Positions 24,208 to 64,000 of a stretch of DNA of 64,000 bases are shown in pieces (position 1 is the first letter of the stretch; each line of letters starts with the position of its first letter). The stretch lies in contig CM068751.1 of assembly GCA_035084275.1 (NCBI GenBank), positions 2,108,001-2,172,000 on the forward strand, in the 5' to 3' direction. The position numbers and the translations under genes were made by a program. The notes below the pieces were generated by a model. The model saw only the letters and a program-made list of their open reading frames with translations, was not told where the DNA came from and searched no databases. The stretch comes from Hydrolagus colliei. Taxonomy: Eukaryota.

Positions 24208-26774
24208 AAATGTATCTGGTTAGAGATAAGGAATAAAAAAGGAGCAGTTACACTGTTAGAGGTATACAATAGACCACCAAATAGTGGGAAGGAGATAGAA
24301 GAGCAGATCTGAAAGCGGATTTCGGAAAGATGCAAAGCCAATAGAGTAGTGATAATTATCCCACCATCGACTGGCAGAATAGGCAGGATGGAGAAGAATT
24401 CCTGAAATGTGTACTTTCTTGATCAGTATGTTGCCAGTCCAACAAGGAAGGAAGCAGTGTTGGATCTAGTTTTGGGGAATGAGGTGGGGCAAGTACAACA
24501 GGTTTCTGTAGATGTCTGTTGGACACCTAGGAAATAGCTATCACAATGTAATTAGATTCAGAGTAATTATGGAAAGGGATAAGGAACACTCAAAGGTGAA
24601 AACACTCAACTGGAAGAAGGCTAATTTCAGTGAGTTAAAACAGGACCTAGGCGAGGTGGACTGAAAAGAACAATTGGCAGGTAAAACAACTAACGAGCAG
24701 TGGGCAATCTTCAAGGAAGATTCGGGCACAGGTCAAAAACATTCCAACAAAGATAAAATGTAGGTCATCCAAACCTCCCTGGATGACTAGGGCAATGGGG
24801 GTTAAAATAAAGCAAAAAAGGGAGGCATATGACAAGTATCAGGCCCAAGATATAGAGGTCAACCAAGCAGAATATAGGAAGTGCAGGAGAGAACTGAAAA
24901 AGGAAATTAGAGGGGCAAAAAGACTACATGAGAAATAATTAGCAGGTAACATTAAAGGGAACCCTAACATATTTTACAAACATATTAAGAGAAAAAGATT
25001 GGTCAAGGGTAGGGTGGAGCCAATTAGGCGCCAAGGAGGAAATCTTACTGTGGAGGCAGAGGGCATGGCTGATGCACTGAATGAGTACTTTCCCCTGTCT
25101 TCACAAGAGAAGAGGATGCAGCTAATGCTACAGTACTGGAGGAGAGTGTACAGGAAATGGATAGGATTAGTATAAACAGAGATGAAGTACTAAAAAGGTT
25201 GATGGTGCTCAAGGTAGATAAGTTGCCCGGTCCGGATGGGATACATCCTAGGTTACTAAGGGAAGTACGGGAGCAAATAGCAGAGACTCAATCTTTCAAT
25301 CTTCCTTGGCAGAGGGGTGGTGCCAGGGGACTGGAGGGTTGCTAATGTTACTCCCTTGTATAAAAAGGGGCAGAAGGACAAACCTGGAAAGTATAGGCTA
25401 GTCAGTCTAATGTCAGTAGTGGGCAAACATCTAGTCTGTAATCAGGGACAAGATAGATCTTCATTGAGAAAGATATAGGCTAATAAAGGACAGACAGCAT
25501 GGATTTGGGAAAGGCAAATTTTGCCTTACAAATCTGATAGAATTTTTCAATCAGTTAATGGAATGGGTGGACGAGGGCAGCACAGTTGATGTAGTTTACA
25601 TGGACTTTCAAAAGGCATTCGACAAAAGTGCCGCATGAGAGGCTTATTAGGAAAGTAGAGGCCCACGGCGTTAAAGGGACAGTGGCAGCGTGGATCCACA
25701 ACTGGCTGTGAGACAGAAAGCAGAGAGTTGTGGTGAGCAGCTGTTTTTCAGACTGGAAGGAAGTGTATAGTGGTGTCCCCCAGGGATCGGTTTTGAGACC
25801 ATTGCTCTTTTTAATATATATTAATGATCTGGACTTGGGTGTAGGGAACACAGTTTCCAAGTTTGCAGATGATACTAATTTAGGAAGAATAGTAAATAGT
25901 GAGGAGGATAGTAACCATCTGCAAGTAGATATAGATAAAATGGTAAAGTGGGCAGACACATGGCAGATGAAGTTTAATGCAGAGAAGTATGAGGTGATAC
26001 ATTTTGGGAGAAGAAATAAGGGGAGGCAATATAGGCTAGATAGTACAATTTTAGGGGATGTGAGGGAACAGAGAGACCTGGGAATTTGTGTGAGTGACTC
26101 TTTGAAGGTGGCAGGATAGGTAGACAAAGCCGTTAAGAAAGCATAAGGGATACTAGGCTTTATAAATAGGGGTATAGAGTACAAAAGTTGGGAAGTGCTG
26201 ACTAACCTCTCTAAAACTTTGGTTAGGCCTCAGCTGGAATACTGTGTTCAATTCTGGTCACCACACTATAGAAAGGATGTTAAGTCATTGGAAAGGGTGC
26301 AAAGAAGGTTTACTACAATGGTACCAGGATTGAGGGACTTCAATTATGGAGAAAGGCTAGATAGGCCTAGATAGGTTTATTCTCTCTAGAACAGAGAAGG
26401 TTGAGAGGAGACCTAATAGAGATTTATAAAATCATGAGGGGATTCGACAGATTGAATAAGGAAAAACTGTTTCCACTGGTGGGCGAATCTGTAACTCATG
26501 GTCAGATTTAAAATAGTTTCAAAACGAAGCAGAGGGGAGCTGAGGAGAAATGTTTTCACTCAGCGGGTTGTCCGAATCTGGAATGCATTGCCTGAAAAGA
26601 TGGTGGAGGCCGATTCGATAGCAGCTTTTAAAAGAGAATTAGATCTTTATTTAGGGAGAACAGGTCTGTTAGGTTATGGGGAGAGAGCTGGGCAGTGCTC
26701 TTTTCAAAGAGCCAGCACAGACTAGATGGGCCGAATGGCCTCCTTTTGTGCTGTAAAATTCTATGTTTCTATGC
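24208..26774 (+). mobile_element. CR1 LINE, about 2.6 kb, disrupted ORF2 (endonuclease C-terminus to RT) plus 3' UTR
   Basis: IWLEIRNKKG...YNRPPNS, PGPDGIHPRLLRE, SGVPQGSVL, KFADDT; multiple stops and frameshifts; TTCTATG tail repeats. Confidence 0.92.
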
Positions 26775-37659: not shown

Positions 37660-38797
37660 ATAGAATCATAGATTCATAGAATTTTACGGCACAAAAGGAG
37701 GCCATTCGGCCCATCTAGTCTGTGCCGGCTCTTTGAAAAGAGCGATTCAATCCCACTGCCCTGCCCGCTCCCCATAGCCTAATAGACCTGTTCTCCCTAA
37801 ATAAAGATCTAATTCCCTTTTAAAAGTTGTTATCGAATCAGCCTCCACCACCTTTTCAGGCAATGCATTCCAGATTCGAACAACTCGCTGAGTGAAAAAA
37901 TTTCTCCTCAGCTCCCCTCTACTGCGCCTTGAAACTATTTTAAATCTGTGACCACGAGTCACAGATTCACCCACGAGTGGAAATAGTTTTTCTCTATTTG
38001 CCCTGTCGAAACCCCTCATGATCTTATAAACCTCTATTAGGTCTCCCCTCAATCTTCTCTGCTCCAGAGAGAATAACCCTAGCCTATCTAGCCTCTCCTC
38101 ATAGCTGAAGTCCCTCAATCCTGGCACCATCCTAGTAAATCTTCGTTGTACCCTTTCCAATGCCTTCACATCCTTTCTGTAGTGTGGTGACCAGAATTGA
38201 ACACAGTATTCCAGCTGAGGCCTCACCAAAGTCCTATAGAGGTTAGTCAGCACTTCCTGACTTTTGTACTCTATACCCCTATTTATAAAGCCTAGTATCC
38301 CATATGCCTTCTTAACAGCCTTGTCTACCTGTCCTGCCACCTTCAACGAGTCACTAACACAAATCCCCAGGTCTCTCTGTTCCTTCACACCATTTAAAAT
38401 TGTACTATCTAGCCTATATTGCCTCCCTTCATTTCTTCTCCCAAAATGCATCACCTCACACTTCTCTGCATTAAACTTCATCTGCCATGTGTCTGCCCAC
38501 TTTACCAATTTGTCTATATCCTCTTGCAGATGGCTACTATCCTCCTCACTGTTTACTATTCTCCCTAACTTAGTGTCATCTGCAAACTTGGAAACTGTAC
38601 TCCGTACACCCAAGTCCAGATCATTGATGTAGATTACAAACAGCAATGGTCCCAAAACCGATCCCTGTGGCACACCACTGCTCACTTCCCTCCAATCTGA
38701 AAAACAGCCGCTCACTACAACTCTCTGCTTTCTGTCTCGCAGCCAGTTGTGGATCCACGCTGCCACTGTCCCTTTTACGCCATGGGCCTTTAATTTC
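37660..38797 (-). mobile_element. CR1 LINE, young 5'-truncated copy with an uninterrupted RT C-terminal frame
   Basis: About 350 codons without stop within ORF 37747-38967 ([22 protein letters not shown]); (ATAGAATC)-type tail. Confidence 0.95.
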
Positions 38798-39429
38798 CTG
38801 TAAACCTTCACGGTTGGTAATATCGCGGTTGGAAAATGCAGTGGCCCCATGGGAAACATGGGGATAAGGGGAATAGAGAGGTGAGAGAGAGAAGGGGGTT
38901 GGGGGATGGGGGGGTTGGGGGGAAGAAAAGGTGAAATAGAGAGAAGGTGAGTCAGAGAGAGATACACTCAGGCATTGCCACTCTTTGTCGAGATCACGAT
39001 ATAACACATGTAATACACACAGAGAGAGATTTGCAGATCCTGGCAGCCAATGCTCCCAAACTTACTTGCTAGGCTGCGGAGAAGCAACAATAAATTCATG
39101 TTACTGTATTTACCTTAATCCTACGAGAGAAGCGTTATTGCTGGTTGATTATAATACCACAACTAGTACTAGTGCTATACACTAGCTGTTCAAAAATTGA
39201 AACCCGCGGATTTAAATCGCGGATTTCCAAAACGCAAAAAGCGGTTTGCGAGGGTTGTCGCATTTAGCAAACAGACGATGATGAATTTCATGGTTGACGA
39301 GGCCACAGTTGGGATGGGATACCTGTGCTTATTGGCCAGGAAACCTGGAGAAACTCATTTTTTCAAATATTGTCAGGGATTCTTTAACACATTATGATTT
39401 TCTTGTTGTGCAACATCCATTTGAACTGG

Positions 39430-42023: not shown

Positions 42024-42196
42024 TTAATAATCAGTCTCTCCTGAAGTTGATGTTGATTCTGAACTGCTGGTTGATGAGCTGGAAGAACTGGAAGTAGCAA
42101 CTGTTGCCTTTTGGACTTTCCTCAGCATTCTGGTCATTTGACTTGGTTTATATGGGAGTCGCTCACATTCAGGATCCTGGCACGTCCTCAATTTGC
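42024..42196 (-). CDS. Candidate distal terminal exon of the RhoGEF
   Basis: ttttag|GC acceptor; phase 1 matches the donor at 50593; open frame (G)KLRTCQDPECERLPYKPSQMTRMLRKVQKATVATSSSSSSSTSSSESTSTSGETDY*. Confidence 0.6.
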
Positions 42197-42520
42197 CTAA
42201 AAGTCACAATAGGAAGAGTTAATGACACACACAGAGACACACACACATACACATCAGTTTTGAGATATTTTTCTTTCATTGGTCAGGCAGGAGTGAAATG
42301 CAAATGGAAGCCTATTACCCTGCCTAAGAGTATTCAAACCAGAAACAGTTCAACGCTTGTTACTTCCACGTGGAAATGATCATGTTTAGAATGGAATGTG
42401 TACTCTCTCCCATGATTACCTAATTTCACAGAGTATTAGGTCCAAGTTGGCAAAAGCCAAAGCTTGGGAATCACAAAGTGGTAATTGAAGTCCTGTTGGG
42501 AGTTTAAACAGCTAAAATGC

Positions 42521-56789: not shown

Positions 56790-57084
56790 CAATAATTCCT
56801 GTTTAGAATTAACTAACGCTTTTCATTTCTTCTAGACGTCTCAAAGCGCTTCACGGAATATACTGCAAAGTATATTGACTGTGTATTTATGGGCGAAACA
56901 CGGCAGCCAGTGGCACACAGCAGTGACCCACAACAGTCACGGATTGAAATGACCAATTTTATTATTGTTTTTTTTTAAGGGATTATTATTAGGCATGTGG
57001 AGTAAGGATACTTGCTCAAGGTTTCGCCCTGACCTGCCTGGATTCGAAACACAGGTAAGGTGAGTGCTCTAACCAGTGAGCTAC
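56790..57084 (-). mobile_element. tRNA-derived SINE
   Basis: Same family, reverse orientation. Confidence 0.85.
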
Positions 57085-58179
57085 ATATACTGTGTACAGT
57101 TTCTTCAAATACATTTTTCTTTCCAGCAATTACAGGTTGCACCAGGGTTGTGATTCTTACCTTTTCCTTTAAGAACCATTAATGGGAAGCTGATGATCCA
57201 CCAGTTACCATATTAAGTTGACAACGCCGTGTTGTAATTAATGCAATATTTAAACATACTTACTGCACCTAACAGAACTTTGTGCTCAAGTAATGTGAAC
57301 ACATCTCCTCATAGTGTGTACTGTACTGTACTTACCGCGAAAACACAAAAGTATTTCAAAACTCTGCAGCTTGTTGAAAGTTAAGCTCCTACAACTAGCA
57401 ATACTCACCCATTCACCAAGCCTTCCCCATGAACCAAGTCTTCCCCTCACATAATTGAATGCGCCATTCATTCTTAGTGATAGTCTAACCTAGATGTGTG
57501 TCCAGAAGACTACAATTTCCACATTAGGCTTCCAATTTCCCACATCCGGCAACAAGCTTATTGGGAAGAGGAAATCAGCTTTGGTCCAGATATGTTTAAC
57601 AGTAACATTGACTGAAACATTAACTCAAGGATTACAGATATGTATGAGGTGTGTCATCATAATACCTAACATAAAGGCTGGTGTGGAGGTCAACCTTTAA
57701 CTTCAGGTAGAGTAGTTACCAGCTGTAGCCATAGTCATTACAGTCAACAGTTGTTTTATTATGCACATGAATCATGTTTTTTCAGCCAAGATGATTTTGC
57801 CTTGAGTTGAGCATTTCCTTTTATATTCTAAATACCACAGAGTTAATGGGTTACTGCTGCTGTCTGTGCTCTGCCTACTGAAGACCACAGGACCAATAGG
57901 AAAACACTTTGCTTGGGAGCAGTGGCACAGTGAAAAGTGGCATAGCTTCAGTCAAAGGTTTTATGCATTTGGTCCAAGTTAATGGAAGTGATAATAGCAA
58001 TACAGTAATCATAATAATAATCTTTATGTCCTTGTTTTCTACCATTTGATAATTTGACGTCTCAAAGTGTTTTACATAATTTTATTGTAAGGTCTAATGA
58101 CAGTGTATTTTGTAAGCGAACATAAATATTGTTTATATATTGTTTATTGTTGTTTATTGTTGTTTATTGTTGTTGTTTG

Positions 58180-58460
58180 ATTCCCCCCCTCTTGCCTCCT
58201 GGCCTATCCCCCCCACCTCTTCCTCTTCGCTCACTCCCTTTTCCCACTTTCTCTACCCCATTTTCCCTTTTTCCTCTTCTCTCCCTCTTCCCTCTTGCCC
58301 CCCTTTCTCCCTGATTTTGCCCCTCACCCACCTTTCCCTCCCTTTCCTTTGTCCCCCCTCCCTTTCTCCCCCCTCTTCCTCCCTGACCTTGCTGTACACC
58401 ACCTTTCCCTCCCTCTCCCCCCTTGCCCTCTTTTCCCCCTTTCTCCCCTGTCCCCACTTC
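58180..58460. repeat. Polypyrimidine (C/T) low-complexity tract
   Basis: About 280 bp of almost pure C/T. Confidence 0.85.
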
Positions 58461-58690
58461 CACGACTGTTTGTGTGACACTGCTGTGTGCAATTTGGCTG
58501 TCGCGTTTCGCCCACAAATATACAGTCAATTTTCCTACTCTTCTTCATCCTGCCCCGACACCTCCCCCCTGCTCTTGTCCCTACCTAACTGTACAACGCC
58601 TTGGGACATCCTCTCGACGTGAAAGGTGCTATATAAATGTAAGTTTTGATTGGTTGGTTGGTTGGTTGGTTGGTTGATTGATTGATTGAA
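58458..58690 (+). mobile_element. SINE body joined to L2 3' tail, followed by (TTGG)n/(TTGA)n
   Basis: CACGACTGTTTGTGTGACACTGCTGTG...CAGTCAATT then CGCCTTGGGACATCCTCTCGACGTGAAAGG. Confidence 0.7.
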
Positions 58691-59258
58691 CATTCCAGAG
58701 TTCGGATGATACAAACAGCAAAAGTAATGCTGCTAAACTCCTTCATTTTTGTACTAGTTTAGTTCTCTTCCTTCCACTTTTATCCCCTCTTCTGAAAGCA
58801 TGGATTATTGCTAGCATTCAGTTTAGTTTTACTTTGTATCATTAATTTGGCTGGGATTAAACCAAAATCCTACAGTTAAACACAATGGTTAAACACAATA
58901 AATGTGACATTAAGGATCTCAGATTCTTTTTATGGCACCACTAAAGGTGCTATTAGAAAGGTATCACAATGTATATGCCATAAAATATAACAACTCAACA
59001 TGGTAATAAATTGGAAAAAAAATTGAAACCCTAAGTAACACAACTTGTATCGCGAAAGAAATGAACCATTGCCCCAGGCCTTGAAGAGTCTCTTTGTTTC
59101 AATTGTCATAAATTATAGCAACAGAATTCCCATTGCTATCTTTCGCAAGTCAAACTTTCTCCTTCATCTGAGTGGCGTTCAGAATTGGGTGGCCTCAACC
59201 AAGTTGGAAAATAAATTAAGTGTCACAGGTGGTAAACCTACCAGTTTGCTCTCAAGAG

Positions 59259-59570
59259 AAATAATAATCCTTGCATTTTGATATAGAGCTTCTCACGTCT
59301 TCTAGGCAGATGTCTCAAAGCGCTTCACAGAATGTACTGTAAAGTAAATTGTGGGCGAAACGTGGGAGCCAATTTCACACAGCAGTGTCCCACAAACAGT
59401 CGTGGATTGAAATGACTATTTTTATTATTGTCTTTTTTTTTTAGAGGGATTATTATCAGGAGTGTGTAGTAAGGAAACTTGCCCAAGGTTTCGCCCTGAA
59501 GTGCCTGGATTCAAACACAGGTTTCACATTTGTAAGGCGAGCGCTCTAACCACTGAGCTACAGGAGCTCC
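59259..59570 (-). mobile_element. tRNA-derived SINE, full length
   Basis: Same family, reverse orientation. Confidence 0.88.
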
Positions 59571-59643
59571 ATGATATATTCTTCAAACAGAAAGAATGCA
59601 ATGTATGACTGCTGTGTTTTGTGATTTGTCAGGTGGGTCTTAC

Positions 59644-61039: not shown

Positions 61040-61144
61040 CTCCTTTGCTACCATGGCAGCTTTCGTGATTGACCTCTTTCCCAGTGAAGATGGGAAACTG
61101 ACAGAGCTTGCAGTGGAATTTTGTAATTCTTGAGAACTTATTTC
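61040..61144 (-). CDS. Candidate N-terminal repeat exon, 105 bp
   Basis: cttgaag|GAA...AAGGAG|gtagga; EISSQELQNSTASSVSFPSSLGKRSITKAAMVAKE; phase 0-0. Confidence 0.65.
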
Positions 61145-61270
61145 CTTCAAGAACAGAACAAAAGGTGATGTTAGTATTGTCATCTCTTAGTTACACTCTG
61201 AGTAAGATCAGGAAAAGCAGAGTATTGCTGCAAATATTGTTGAATTTGGTCCTTGTCATCAGAGTCTTAC

Positions 61271-61381
61271 CTCCTTTGATTTTTTGAAACTGCTTTTCTG
61301 GTTTGCCTTTACAGTTGTTTGTGGGTGCTTCTTGTTTGGTGAAGATGCATAAATTGGATGCTTGTCCGTAATATTTAGTTC
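61271..61381 (-). CDS. Candidate N-terminal repeat exon, 111 bp, HPIYAS motif
   Basis: catgaag|GAA...AAGGAG|gtaaga; ELNITDKHPIYASSPNKKHPQTTVKANQKSSFKKSKE; phase 0-0. Confidence 0.7.
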
Positions 61382-61557
61382 CTTCATGAACAAAGAATAG
61401 GTTATACAGTACTTGAAATCAAATTAATCCCAGCTATAGTGACTTTTCAAGGAAAGGACTGTCAGCTATAGTTTGTTTTTCTTTTGAAAAGTTGTAATAG
61501 ACACTTATATTGGGTTGAAAAAAAAACCTTTCTTGGTTCAATATTGTTAAATAAAAA

Positions 61558-61925
61558 TAGTAATCCTTGCATTTGATATGGCACCTTATCATAAGACATA
61601 AGTCTTTGAAATGTCTCAAAGCACTTCACAAGAATATACTCTAAAGTGAATTGGCTGTATATTTTGTGGGCAAAATGCAGCAGCCAATTGCGCACAGCAG
61701 TGTCCCACAAACAACAGTGGATTGAGTGACCAAATTATTATTACAGATTTTTTTTAAAAGGGGTTATGACTCCCCTGAAATGCAGTCCTCTAATCGATTA
61801 ACAAGTGGGTTCCACTTGTTAAACAGAGGCATGTGGTATAAGGAAATTCGTCTAGCGCTTCGCCTTCCCTGGGAATTGAACCCAGGTCTTCTCTTGTGAG
61901 GCAAGTGCTCTAAACAACACACTAC
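61558..61925 (-). mobile_element. tRNA-derived SINE, long variant
   Basis: Family 3' end, extra central segment as at 36943, tRNA-like head. Confidence 0.82.
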
Positions 61926-62890
61926 ATACAGATCTCCACAAAATAAATAAGAACATTATCTGAGACATAAGTTTTACAATGACAATCATTGGCTCCAAAG
62001 TTATTGATTTGCCCAGAGAAATCATAATATCTCACGTAATATTGGATAAATATGAAACATTGTCTGAAACATTGTTGCAGTTTTGTGACTACTGGGATGA
62101 AACTGTAAAAGTCTTGACCTGAAAGAATAGTAGAGATCCTGAGAATGCAGGGCTGTTTTAAAAAATGACAGGAAATTATGGTCCCTTCTTTCAGATTTCT
62201 TTTATTGAGAAATTAAGGTGAACGACAGCATATCAATCACTTAGGTTGACAAGATCAATACTAAGAAATGAGTCAATAGGCTTGTTTAGTTAACATCAAT
62301 TTTTAGTTTAATGTTTGTAGGAAGAAAATTGAGAAGGGTTAGAAGAATCACTGTCTTGAATTAATTTTTAGATTGGAGATTTTTGTGTCTTGCTTCACGT
62401 AATGGACCTTACCCAATGACCAGACTTTTAGGAACATCTGCAATAGTTCCTTAATGATTTACAGATTATTGAGGTTTACTTTCTAATGAATATTCAACAA
62501 AGATGTAATCTTCAAGAGGATTATGTAAATGTTTCTGAAATAAAGGAAGGAAATTTGAAATAAGTAGATGAAATAAATATAATTATACAATATAACTTAA
62601 GTTGCATATGCTAGTGAGCATAAGCTTATAGCCACTCGGTTCCATTTTTAATTACGTTTGTTTATTTCAGACACTGATATAATGCACTGGGGATGAGTTA
62701 GGTTCAAGCAAATGTCTCAGAATAAATATTGTCTCAGAATAAGAACTACACAAAGCCATTGACTAACGCATCCCCCGGGTATCATAATGCTTCATACCAA
62801 ACCCCCAGCTTGGCTCTAAATCCAGTGCCTTGGGATATCCTCGCAAAGTGAAACATGCTATACAAATATAATTTGTTATAATTGTTGTAC

Positions 62891-63016
62891 CTCCTTTAAT
62901 TTTTTGAAACTGCCCTTTTAGTTTGACATTCAAGATGATGCAGGTTGCTTTCCTGATGAAGGTAGGAGGCTGCCAGGTCTTGCGGTATCATTTTCTACAC
63001 TCTCATATATTGGTTC
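62891..63016 (-). pseudogene. Repeat exon copy with two in-frame stops (pseudo-exon or poison exon), EPIYESV motif
   Basis: cttgaag|GAA...AAGGAG|gtacaa; EPIYESVENDTARPGSLLPSSGKQPASS*MSN*KGSFKKLKE; 3' end homologous to exon 61271-61381. Confidence 0.65.
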
Positions 63017-63149
63017 CTTCAAGAATAGATAAAAAGGCTATATTGGTACCTAAATAGTTCTACTATCTATAGTTATCCGTGAGATCAGGGAAAACACCAT
63101 GTTCCCTCAACTTTAATATCCATTTAAGGGCAGGCAGAGAGGAACTCAC

Positions 63150-63260
63150 CTGTGTTTCATTGGATGGTGACATTTCATTTAGTGAACGATTTGGTCCCTC
63201 ATAATTTAGATCCGATATGCTCTCATAAATCGGCTCCGGTGAGCGGTCATCAGTTCGTTC
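63150..63260 (-). CDS. Candidate N-terminal exon, 111 bp, EPIYESI motif
   Basis: ttttag|GAA...CAG|gtgagt; ERTDDRSPEPIYESISDLNYEGPNRSLNEMSPSNETQ; CpG-retaining; phase 0-0. Confidence 0.72.
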
Positions 63261-63754
63261 CTAAAATAACCAGGAAAATAAGTGAATGTTAGTTAACTGA
63301 GTAATTTAAGTCAATTTAATTCTCCTAATCCTGAGTGTATTCACAGTGAATTCAGGGAAATACGTTTTTGGAATAATGTTTCTTTTGAGTGTTGATAGAT
63401 TGTAATAAGGGCCAGTTTGGGTTGAACAAACTTCCTGGTTTGAAATGAATTAAGAGCTAGAATTGGAAGTTATTCACATGTGTTACATCTGTGCACAACA
63501 TGTCTCCTTGTCCTGCAAAAAAAAAAGGGTCATGTGGAGCCCACATCTGTAACTTGAGATATAGTAATTGACCTCCCATACCATGAATATTGCGACCCTG
63601 ATGGTTTCATTATCACTTGGAAAACACAAAATTTAAAACGTTCAATGATTTTATTTGTTTAAAGCTGAAAATGTCCTTTGCATTATATATCCAGTGATAT
63701 TTAAGATCACTCACAATAAGTTGCTGGCTTGTAATTGCTTCTAATCCATTCTCT

Positions 63755-64000
63755 TGTAGAATAGAATCATAGAATCTTACAGTACAGAAGGAGGCCATTC
63801 AGCCCATCATGCCTATGCCGTCTCTTTGAAAGAGCTACCAACTAGTCCCACTCCGCTACTCTTATCCCATATCACTGCAAATTTTTCATTTTTAAGTACT
63901 TATCCTTTGAAAGCTCTTTTGAGAGTTATTGTCAAATCGCTTCCACCACCCTTTCAAGGAACAAAAAATGATCTTCTCCCCTCTTCCACATTCATTGTTT
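63755..64000 (-). mobile_element. CR1 LINE 3' end
   Basis: ATAGAATCATAGAATC tail, GGAGGCCATTCAGCCC. Confidence 0.82.

Follow-up and report, generated by a model that had tools for sequence, protein, structure and literature searches.

We consider it probable that the window (the whole 64-kb stretch of Hydrolagus colliei DNA analysed) holds the last six modules, and one dead fragment, of an array of phase-0 exons, and that this array encodes a disordered, phosphotyrosine-docking arm at the N terminus of a paralogue of Asef, SPATA13 and collybistin that lacks SH3. Our verdict is that the domain architecture is real, undescribed and partly eroded in H. colliei. A sequence-only reading had proposed that exon duplication built a modular, splice-tunable arm of tyrosine motifs upstream of a Rho-family GEF, and taken overall that interpretation is partly supported.

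The four minus-strand units of that reading are where it had placed them, with lengths that are multiples of 3, GAA starts and canonical splice sites, and a pyrimidine tract and AG precede each of them. The unit u1 (63260-63150, 111 nt) is an open, phase-0, exon-like module with acceptor ttattttag/ and donor CAG/gtgagt, and encodes EPIYESI (63236-63216) as well as NYEGP. The 126-nt u2 (63016-62891), a duplicate module disabled by stops, starts with EPIYESV (63016-62996) and ends in GSFKKLKE. Two open phase-0 exons follow on the same strand: u3 (61381-61271, 111 nt), with HPIYAS (61360-61343) and the basic tail KSSFKKSKE, and u4 (61144-61040, 105 nt), a duplicate of the u2/u3 type that contains no tyrosine. 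All three motif readings held on re-examination. The AAGGAG/gt ends attributed to three units are those of u2, u3 and u4, from which u1 differs by its CAG/gtgagt, and the flanks said to be common to the units came back as repeat families D1, D3 and D12 in our repeat search. A further, strongly conserved minus-strand exon, x (62534-62463, 72 nt), is situated between u2 and u3 and was absent from the earlier reading; it reads KHLHNPLEDYIFVEYSLESKPQ, followed by an in-frame TAA (62468-62466) and then TCT/gtaaat. The remaining fragment of the array, u5 (60063-59958, minus strand), is a u4-type copy truncated at its 5' end that has neither a usable acceptor nor a GT donor. Between the arm and the DH domain, e5 (59832-59644, minus strand) is an open phase-0 exon of 189 nt encoding a Ser/Thr/Gln-rich linker, and the first DH exon, dh1 (56742-56563, minus strand), runs from LGYY to KDIFE and has no SH3 exon before it. 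Pfam, PDB and tblastn comparisons place the other DH-PH exons of this gene, also on the minus strand, at 55795-55613, about 53798-53262 (two exons), 52270-52139, 51444-51193 and 50656-50564. Each exon was searched individually.

A chance origin of the tyrosine motifs is excluded. The pattern [EH]P[IV]Y[EA][ST] occurs 3 times in the six frames of the 64-kb window, each time inside these units, while in 200 dinucleotide-preserving shuffles of the window, our null for all motif counts, its mean was 0.02 and a count of 3 was never reached (0/200). The 7-residue form of the motif occurs twice in the window and in 0/200 shuffles. As to how the units arose, the proposal that they are exon duplicates stood for u2, u3 and u4 but not for u1. 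Local alignment with 40-nt flanks gave z scores of 14.0 for u2-u3, 12.9 for u2-u4 and 5.8 for u3-u4, with 0/300 shuffles as high in each case, and nhmmer searches of single units against the window linked u2, u3 and u4 at E values of 1.4e-7, 4.1e-6, 1.6e-7, 9.6e-4 and 8.5e-8. A profile of u2-u4 also matched u5, which constitutes repeat family D2, at E 9.3e-5. Against the other units u1 scored z 0.8-3.0 (300 shuffles), in an nhmmer search of the window it matched itself only, and its likeness to u2 consists of the EPIYES codons alone. These comparisons establish the predicted exons u2, u3 and u4 as mutual duplicates.

A counterpart of the arm is present in XP_007887848.1, a computational RefSeq model of 1186 aa from an older annotation of Callorhinchus milii, in which the counterparts of u3, u4, e5 and dh1 are adjacent or nearly so and in the predicted order. 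By BLASTP, u3 matched residues 631-670 (57.5% identity over 40 residues, E 1e-11, one in-frame gap of 3 residues), u4 matched the segment directly after it, residues 671-699 (76% over 29 residues, E 5e-12), e5 matched residues 712-777 (56% over 66 residues, E 3e-17, two in-frame gaps; tblastn E 3.5e-12) and dh1 matched residues 778-841 (64% identity, E 6e-26). The gaps in these four alignments are in frame without exception, and the remaining DH-PH exons showed 81-86% identity by tblastn. By these alignments u3, u4 and the 189-nt e5 are coding in the Callorhinchus RefSeq model. The exon x matched residues 607-628 (tblastn, 86% identity over 22 residues, E 2.9e-7 for the window), and the collinear counterpart of u2, residues 582-605, is intact in Callorhinchus. 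For u1 the match to residues 546-572 was 41% identical over 27 residues, with E 7e-4 against the single protein and 3.8 against the whole window, and its candidate place in the arm is given by motif and collinearity only. The arm of XP_007887848.1, 777 aa long, contains 47 tyrosines, 13 P[IV]Y motifs and five basic-aromatic tails, the next module starting directly after each tail. The modular arm that had been proposed is thus borne out by Callorhinchus, with its long series of modules and 13 P[IV]Y motifs, but not in full by H. colliei, in which u2 and x carry stops.

The exons downstream of the arm gave a Pfam RhoGEF match (1.2e-17) and a PH domain of the SOS1/NGEF type, and one exon compared with the PDB matched ARHGEF4 (5e-26) and collybistin (4e-22). 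The assignment of the gene to the Rho-family GEFs was therefore correct, and by the Pfam and PDB matches it is a DH-PH GEF of the Asef/collybistin/SPATA13 type. It shares with Asef (ARHGEF4), SPATA13 (Asef2) and collybistin (ARHGEF9) the DH-PH core, the position of the first DH exon and the SOS1/NGEF-type PH domain; it differs in having a long tyrosine-motif arm in place of the SH3 domain. We found no Pfam match to SH3 on any exon piece or on XP_007887848.1. The dh1 exon aligns to collybistin residues just past the SH3 domain, and where the subfamily has its autoinhibitory SH3 directly before DH, the exon preceding dh1 is the Ser/Thr-rich e5. In a profile search the best 15 matches were all chondrichthyan and had no SH3 Pfam entry, SH3 being present from the 16th match on. 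The SH3-bearing family members formed a single clade in our tree (support 100) that excludes this gene. Callorhinchus did not group with the elasmobranch clade, at a weak fork with support 65, and an AU test did not reject their union (p 0.39). Nothing resembling the APC-binding region of Asef and Asef2 was noticed in XP_007887848.1. Pfam searches of the units and arms returned no domain above threshold; a sub-threshold match of e5 to an epiglycanin repeat (E 0.054) was rejected as compositional. The best match of one protein search, a duplicated ARHGEF4-type model with SH3, was set aside as not relevant.

We also examined how far such arms extend across the cartilaginous fishes. Arrays of tyrosine motifs ahead of the DH domain were present in models from 10 chondrichthyan species, and the SH3-less elasmobranch relatives carry 3-10 tandem motifs of the EHIYDTVAG type. 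The count of tandem motifs reaches 10 in Scyliorhinus canicula X1, where nine of them are IYDTVAG, and also in S. torazame; Pristiophorus follows with 8, Rhincodon and Stegostoma have 4, and Hemiscyllium, C. punctatum and Narcine have 3 each. Models of Amblyraja, Mobula and Pristis and a 324-aa model of Heterodontus are armless. In S. canicula, isoforms X4 and X5 each lack, relative to X1, exactly one motif unit of 14 or 15 residues, differences that fit cassette exons and hence splice tuning. ARHGEF4, ARHGEF9 and SPATA13 are not known to have such repeats, and among 359 collected family proteins none of these three types with SH3 has an array; the 22 top motif counts all belong to the chondrichthyan SH3-less clade. 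In the sequences compared, the SH3-less paralogue with an arm was found only in cartilaginous fishes. Conservation of the motifs, which had been named as a check, was seen as arrays in models of 10 species but not in direct comparison of the window units with the elasmobranch arms, in which the best BLASTP match (E 0.097) was not significant beyond the short motif and x had no match. The likeness between holocephalan and elasmobranch arms, as judged from these sequences, could be convergence. A resemblance of x to the stretch DYVFYGEYSES of elasmobranch dh1 was dropped, BLASTP giving no match. Using residues 130-777 of XP_007887848.1 as query, we found no other protein with such an arm at E <=0.001 among 7999 candidates (cluster representatives of 0.55-1.75x the query length), and a search of the ESM Atlas gave no usable match. 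An AlphaFold2 model of the Stegostoma orthologue, built with few sequences covering the arm, gives pLDDT <50 for residues 1-51 and 71-187 and pLDDT >90 for most of the DH domain.

That the units are chance open frames within an intron or upstream region, and not exons, is highly improbable given the motif excess matched by 0/200 shuffles, the collinear and adjacent matches in the Callorhinchus protein model and the splice-site flanks kept between duplicates; for u3, u4, e5 and x the matches to the predicted protein XP_007887848.1 refute it. More weight is due to the possibility that a long arm is being lost in this species, u1, u3 and u4 remaining open through recent death or because they are now 5' UTR, with the protein starting near or after e5. 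Two of the six collinear modules bear stops. In u2 these are an in-frame TGA (62932-62930) and TAA (62920-62918), which make it a predicted pseudo-exon or poison exon. A search for RNA runs of this species returned a single run, kept as contigs, not recorded as RNA and holding 0.90 of the words. We checked the stop letters in it as a second DNA data set: a contig spans u2 with no difference listed at the stops, no difference is listed for x, and the stops of both modules are thus present in both data sets. The dead fragment u5 is found nearby in this stretch as well, tyrosine is absent from u4, and the motif of u3 is reduced to a degenerate HPIYA. Because of the stops in u2 and x, the missing tyrosine of u4 and the degenerate motif of u3, we regard the arm portion in the window as partly eroded. 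If u2 or x is included in the transcript, the arm would not be translated through to the DH domain. Loss is also favoured by the Callorhinchus Ensembl models of 406-411 aa, which are armless and start at dh1, by Narcine X4, which has another first exon, and by the armless models of Amblyraja, Mobula and Pristis. Set against this, u1, u3, u4 and e5 together give 172 codons without a stop, the alignments of u3, u4, e5 and dh1 to XP_007887848.1 contain in-frame gaps only, and x is as similar to Callorhinchus as the DH-PH core is, which implies constraint until recently. Since u2 and x are disabled by stops, an open arm requires splicing of u1 directly to u3, and omission of u2 and x preserves the reading frame. 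An alternative donor within x (GAAA/gtaaac) avoids the stop, but was rejected, as the resulting 55-nt exon shifts the frame of u3. On balance we hold that a wholly relic arm is unlikely, though a real contender, and we prefer an arm that is coding and eroded in part.

If the arm is translated, its ancestral holocephalan module would have been E-P-I-Y-E-x-(I/V), a spacer and then a basic-aromatic tail ..F..FKKSKE, with the exon border at KE/E, matching the AAGGAG/GAA signature. We infer phosphorylation and SH2 docking because of the likeness to motifs in the literature. By analogy with these, kinases of the Src/Abl type may phosphorylate the arm tyrosines and multivalent SH2 adaptors may then bind the phosphotyrosines, so that Cdc42/Rac exchange would be co-located with adaptor-driven machinery; Nck would be the likely adaptor for the EHIYD(T)V form seen in elasmobranchs. 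The basic-aromatic tails may hold the arm on acidic membranes, and modules would be gained, lost and perhaps skipped. The tyrosines could have other uses. After loss of the autoinhibitory SH3 domain the unphosphorylated motifs might, on the pattern of the Vav acidic region, dock on and block the DH domain, phosphorylation releasing it, and would then not be docking sites for other proteins. In favour of such cis-regulation, the window paralogue lacks SH3 and, in a review, the SH3 domain of Asef is described as binding the DH catalytic site, Vav as released by phosphorylation of three acidic-region tyrosines and GEFs of the Tim type as autoinhibited by a phosphorylation motif. A single docking site would nevertheless hardly account for ten or more near-identical copies, and residues 71-187 of the Stegostoma AlphaFold2 model, which include all four motifs, are unordered, undocked and without secondary structure, a weak test given how few sequences cover the arm; we think cis-regulation improbable. 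Marginally less probable still is that the motifs are sorting signals, recognised in their unphosphorylated state by the mu subunits of clathrin adaptors and recruiting the GEF to coated pits. A tyrosine followed by two residues and a bulky hydrophobic one is a clathrin-adaptor signal, and YESI, YESV, YDTV, YETI and YNTI fit the Y-x-x-(I/V) pattern; the arm of XP_007887848.1 has 18 such sites and S. canicula X1 has 11. On its N-terminal side, however, the tyrosine is flanked by residues (E, then E/H/P, then I/V) that are as strongly conserved as those that follow it, as is typical of kinase and SH2 recognition, and binding to Nck is proven for this extended motif.

The reading we favour, docking of SH2 adaptors on the phosphorylated arm, has a wider form that we offer only tentatively and by analogy: that cartilaginous fishes encode a host fusion of a multivalent phosphotyrosine scaffold of the EPIYA/Nck type with a Cdc42/Rac GEF, in which the arm replaced SH3 as the regulatory input, modules undergo birth and death and valency is set via exon skipping. 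If true, one phosphorylated protein would gather SH2 adaptors (Nck with N-WASP) and also generate the GTPase that co-activates them, an endogenous counterpart of the assemblies built piecemeal by Tir, by A36 with intersectin and by bacterial EPIYA effectors. Multivalent phosphotyrosine scaffolds and Dbl GEFs are each well known, and in the open full-text literature searched we found no description of the two combined in one protein. With up to 13 motif copies, this vertebrate gene family may be a natural test bed for valency against signalling output, for the control of a GEF without an SH3 lock and for the growth and shrinkage of disordered arms as exons are duplicated and decay. Annotators of shark and chimaera "ARHGEF4-like" genes can expect the short phase-0 exons that precede them to be coding, some of them now being putative poison or pseudo-exons.

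Several known systems resemble parts of this architecture. Vav is likewise a DH-PH GEF whose N-terminal acidic tyrosines tie it to tyrosine-kinase signalling, but only three tyrosines are involved there, they dock on the DH domain of the same protein, and Vav also contains SH2 and SH3 domains, whereas here the array is repetitive and predicted to be disordered. Pragmin and the PEAK family, and p140Cap, are likewise host proteins with EPIYA/EPLYA motifs that bind the Csk SH2 domain once phosphorylated; being pseudokinases or adaptors, they lack a GEF domain, and their motifs number one or two. The Lys/Phe/Ser pattern of the 25-residue MARCKS effector domain (PMC4607481) resembles that of the Callorhinchus tails KAKKKFFKSLFKKMKE, KMKKRFSSIFRKPKQ and KPKKKFRNPFKKSKE, which are shorter and less charged and have no Pfam match; in the window only the remnants KSSFKKSKE (u3) and GSFKKLKE (dead u2) are left.

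The bacterial EPIYA effectors (CagA, Tarp, AnkA, LspA, Tir) are, according to PMC3593179, proteins with multi-copy motifs of the E-P-I-Y-A type in duplicated segments of about 15-50 residues within disordered regions, the copy number varying with lineage. That source counts ENIYE, ESIYE, EPIYG, EPVYA and EHIYD among the EPIYA-related motifs, which it places in disordered segments that have been duplicated; u1 and u2 carry EPIYE and u3 HPIYA, and EPIYE and the elasmobranch EHIYD fall within its related-motif range. The effectors are injected proteins, delivered by type III or IV secretion, whose segments expand by recombination in one reading frame, whereas the window gene is a spliced vertebrate host gene in which each module is an exon of its own and the array is joined to a catalytic GEF. 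By analogy the gene would resemble the effector class in its working, and it is no member of that class.

The elasmobranch repeat is close to established Nck ligands. The Nck-site peptide of vaccinia A36 (Y112) contains EHIpYDSVAG, the Tir peptide EEHIpYDEVAADP is a ligand of the Nck SH2 domain (PDB 2CI9), and nephrin, which has three motifs of this kind, drives phase separation of Nck and N-WASP. Compared with EEHIYDTVAG, A36 (EHIYDSVAG) differs at one residue and Tir of EPEC (Y474, EEHIYDEVAA) at 2/10, a near-identity to the EPEC and vaccinia sites that points to convergence on an optimal kinase/SH2 ligand. Under the ligand rule drawn from Tir and nephrin (hydrophobic at -1, acidic at +1 and/or +2, V at +3), EEHIYDTVAG fits, IYESI and IYESV of the window fit in part (I at -1, E at +1, S at +2, I/V at +3) and IYASS does not. 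Nephrin is multivalent, like the elasmobranch arm; Tir, A36 and nephrin present 1-3 copies on a membrane receptor, whereas the elasmobranch arm presents up to 10 on a cytosolic GEF.

The four short minus-strand exon-like units occupy 63260-63150 (u1, 111 nt), 63016-62891 (u2, 126 nt), 61381-61271 (u3, 111 nt) and 61144-61040 (u4, 105 nt), exactly as the sequence-only reading had proposed, and the motifs EPIYESI, EPIYESV and HPIYAS are encoded where it had placed them. As it had also noted, all four units begin with GAA, in each case preceded by a pyrimidine tract and AG, and u2, u3 and u4 end in AAGGAG/gt (slash, exon border); u1 ends in CAG/gtgagt. Across the six frames of the 64-kb window there are three matches to [EH]P[IV]Y[EA][ST], every one inside these units, a count reached in 0 of 200 dinucleotide-preserving shuffles. 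The proposal that the array grew by exon duplication holds for u2, u3 and u4, which are mutual duplicates including their flanks (alignment z 14.0, 12.9 and 5.8, with none of 300 shuffles as high; nhmmer E-values 8.5e-8 to 9.6e-4), the common flanks being repeat families D1, D3 and D12. It is not demonstrated for u1, for which neither shuffle-scored alignment nor nhmmer demonstrated any DNA relation to the other units, only the EPIYES codons being common with u2. Not mentioned in that reading were two in-frame stops in u2, a further exon (x) between u2 and u3, and a 5'-truncated dead copy, u5 (60063-59958, minus strand).

Exons were searched singly rather than as a joined gene model. Those downstream of the units contain a RhoGEF (DH) domain and a PH domain of the SOS1/NGEF type, so that the units do lie upstream of a RhoGEF as had been claimed, and the closest solved structures are ARHGEF4 (5e-26) and collybistin (4e-22). 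The first DH exon (dh1, 56742-56563, minus strand) aligns with collybistin just after the SH3 domain of the latter; ahead of dh1 we found no SH3 exon, the directly preceding exon being the Ser/Thr-rich e5 (59832-59644, minus strand). When one DH exon was compared with 1.84 billion representatives, the clearly closest protein was P0002 from Callorhinchus milii (82% identity), a truncated model in whose 90% cluster sits the 1186-aa RefSeq model XP_007887848.1 of the same species (P0355).

The introns carry tRNA-derived SINE copies (61560-61950, 59300-59590, 56880-57080 and elsewhere; tagctcagtggttagagc..., then a conserved tail), whose depth in the DNA run X1 reaches up to millions, and the large intron that separates e5 from dh1 has, at 58170-58700 on the minus strand, a long purine-rich low-complexity tract of GGGAGA type and a (CAAC)n run. 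Many LINE-type reverse-transcriptase open frames are present in the window, for example at 25558-26229 and 37750-38967.

The last segments of the P0355 arm, that is, of its N-terminal part ahead of the DH domain, match successive window units in order, with all gaps in frame: u3 matches residues 631-670 (57.5% identity, E 1e-11), u4 residues 671-699 (76%, E 5e-12), e5 residues 712-777 (56%, E 3e-17) and dh1 residues 778-841 (64%, E 6e-26). In this protein-model comparison, the adjacency of the segments reproduces the junctions u3/u4/e5/dh1 that had been proposed. A tblastn search of P0355 against the window also revealed x (62534-62463, minus strand), which reads KHLHNPLEDYIFVEYSLESKPQ and matches residues 607-628 (E 2.9e-7); it is more strongly conserved than any other piece of the arm, its 86% identity to Callorhinchus equalling the level of the DH-PH core. 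By collinearity, the counterpart of u2 would be residues 582-605 (EPIYESIAPEKPKSKLSRFFKKSK) and that of u1 about 546-581, the match of the latter alone being non-significant (E 3.8 against the window). Of the 777 residues of the Callorhinchus arm 47 are tyrosines, and the P[IV]Y motif occurs in it 13 times. Five times it shows a basic-aromatic tail of the KKKFFKSLFKKMKE type, and in every case the next residue is the E of the following module. This tail-then-E pattern is, as judged from the sequences, the protein-level image of the AAGGAG/GAA exon borders in the window. Since the P0355 arm is long and its tail/E borders match these exon borders, the window would hold the terminal portion of an array that is far longer and on this comparison must extend past position 64000; from the Callorhinchus arm, about 15 further modules are predicted. 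The start of the P0355 arm, LGYYEDPY (47-54), repeats the start of dh1, LGYYEEEC (778-785), and duplication of the 5' end of the first DH exon may have contributed to growth of the Callorhinchus arm.

Two stops, TGA at 62932-62930 and TAA at 62920-62918, lie in frame in u2, and x has an in-frame TAA at 62468-62466, about two codons or five bases ahead of its donor. A 1973-nt DNA contig from run X1, which may come from the same animal as the window assembly, covers 61821-63793 and differs from the window at 61854, 62106 and 62776; because none of these three listed differences falls within u1, u2 or x, the stops are not an assembly slip. The previously proposed junction 63150>61381, which skips u2 and x, does preserve the reading frame, the splicing itself being predicted. 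Exon x may have been inactivated only recently, may serve as a regulated poison exon, or may close a short isoform made up of the arm alone. In the readable part of the array within the window u1 alone has the full EPIYE motif, u3 having HPIYA and u4 no tyrosine; the array is seen here only at its eroded end. With the stops on one side and the frame-preserving junction and conserved x on the other, we think it unlikely that this species retains the arm only as a relic. That the units are chance frames is refuted for u3, u4, e5 and x by their Callorhinchus matches, and as a general explanation is scarcely credible.

Closest to P0002 are SH3-less shark and ray RefSeq models named 'ARHGEF4-like' or 'ARHGEF9-like', and in a profile search the best 15 matches were all chondrichthyan without an SH3 Pfam entry, such entries appearing from the 16th match on. 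The elasmobranch arms contain tandem motifs with a period of 14-15 residues: ten in Scyliorhinus canicula isoform X1 (nine IYDTVAG and one IYETIG) and in S. torazame, eight in Pristiophorus, four each in Rhincodon and Stegostoma, and three each in Hemiscyllium, C. punctatum and Narcine. The arm is absent from the models of Amblyraja, Mobula and Pristis and from a partial Heterodontus model. Among 359 collected family proteins, the top 22 motif counts all fall within the SH3-less chondrichthyan clade. Compared with X1, isoforms X4 and X5 of S. canicula are each shorter by exactly one repeat of 14 or 15 residues; we read each repeat as probably one small symmetric exon, repeat-induced alignment artefacts in the annotation being also possible. 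An armless isoform occurs beside armed ones in Narcine bancroftii, where X4 (P0354) has a 14-residue alternative first exon in place of the whole tyrosine arm. A second branch of the family without SH3 exists in sharks (P0312, Heptranchias; P0310, Heterodontus); it forms a separate long-branched clade (support 100), and its N-terminus is proline-rich or acidic and lacks a tyrosine array. The C-terminal exon of the elasmobranch models (ECERLP...SSSSSSSTSTT...ETESD) has a match in the window at 42027-42203 on the minus strand, in an open piece whose end is a run of serines (...SSSSSSSSTSSSESTSTSGETDY); P0355 lacks that exon and ends differently.

Comparison of the window units with the elasmobranch arms gave no significant similarity apart from the motif (best E 0.097). 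In a quick tree (32 proteins, 436 columns), one clade with support of 100 comprises all the SH3-bearing ARHGEF4, SPATA13 and ARHGEF9 proteins, and another, with support of 99, the elasmobranch arm genes; Callorhinchus sits on a long branch (0.57) with weak placement (65), and its union with the elasmobranch arm genes was not rejected by the AU test (p 0.39). Given this placement, the AU result and an arm similarity limited to the motif, the holocephalan and elasmobranch arm types are likely, though not proven, to be orthologous.

We infer that the arm would be disordered, would offer Src/Abl-type kinases a multivalent substrate and, once phosphorylated, would recruit SH2 adaptors beside the exchange domain. 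AlphaFold2 modelling of the Stegostoma orthologue leaves the arm without predicted structure (pLDDT <50 at residues 1-51 and 71-187), and the DH domain is confident. For the elasmobranch motif, the obvious candidate adaptor would be Nck. For the holocephalan IYES(I/V) motif, candidates may include Src-family and Csk-type SH2 domains, which accept cores of this kind. The literature describes the Nck site at Y112 of A36 as APSTEHIpYDSVAGST (PMC9333988) and the Nck SH2 domain as bound by Tir EEHIpYDEVAADP (PDB 2CI9). The EPIYA-related motifs listed in PMC3593179 include ENIYE, ESIYE, EPIYG, EPVYA and EHIYD, and are described there as lying in duplicated, disordered segments, phosphorylated and promiscuous in binding SH2 proteins. 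Asef is held locked by its own SH3 domain and Vav is freed by tyrosine phosphorylation, as PMC6767298 states; that the arm tyrosines work in cis, like those of Vav, strikes us as quite improbable, and their serving as Y-x-x-hydrophobic sorting signals as marginally more so.

Full-text literature searches with the motif strings, and with family names plus cartilaginous fish terms, returned nothing relevant, and the arm-bearing genes carry automatic annotation names only. Within their reach, neither the ESM Atlas nor a protein search with the arm alone turned up another carrier of such an arm. The basic-aromatic tails of the P0355 arm resemble the MARCKS effector domain as presented in PMC4607481, and may anchor the arm on acidic membranes. 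In nephrin, three motifs similar to those of A36 and Tir create a multivalent Nck binder, which drives phase separation of Nck and N-WASP (PMC10755736). The chondrichthyan architecture combines known kinds, an Asef-type Dbl GEF fused to what would be a multi-phosphotyrosine scaffold.
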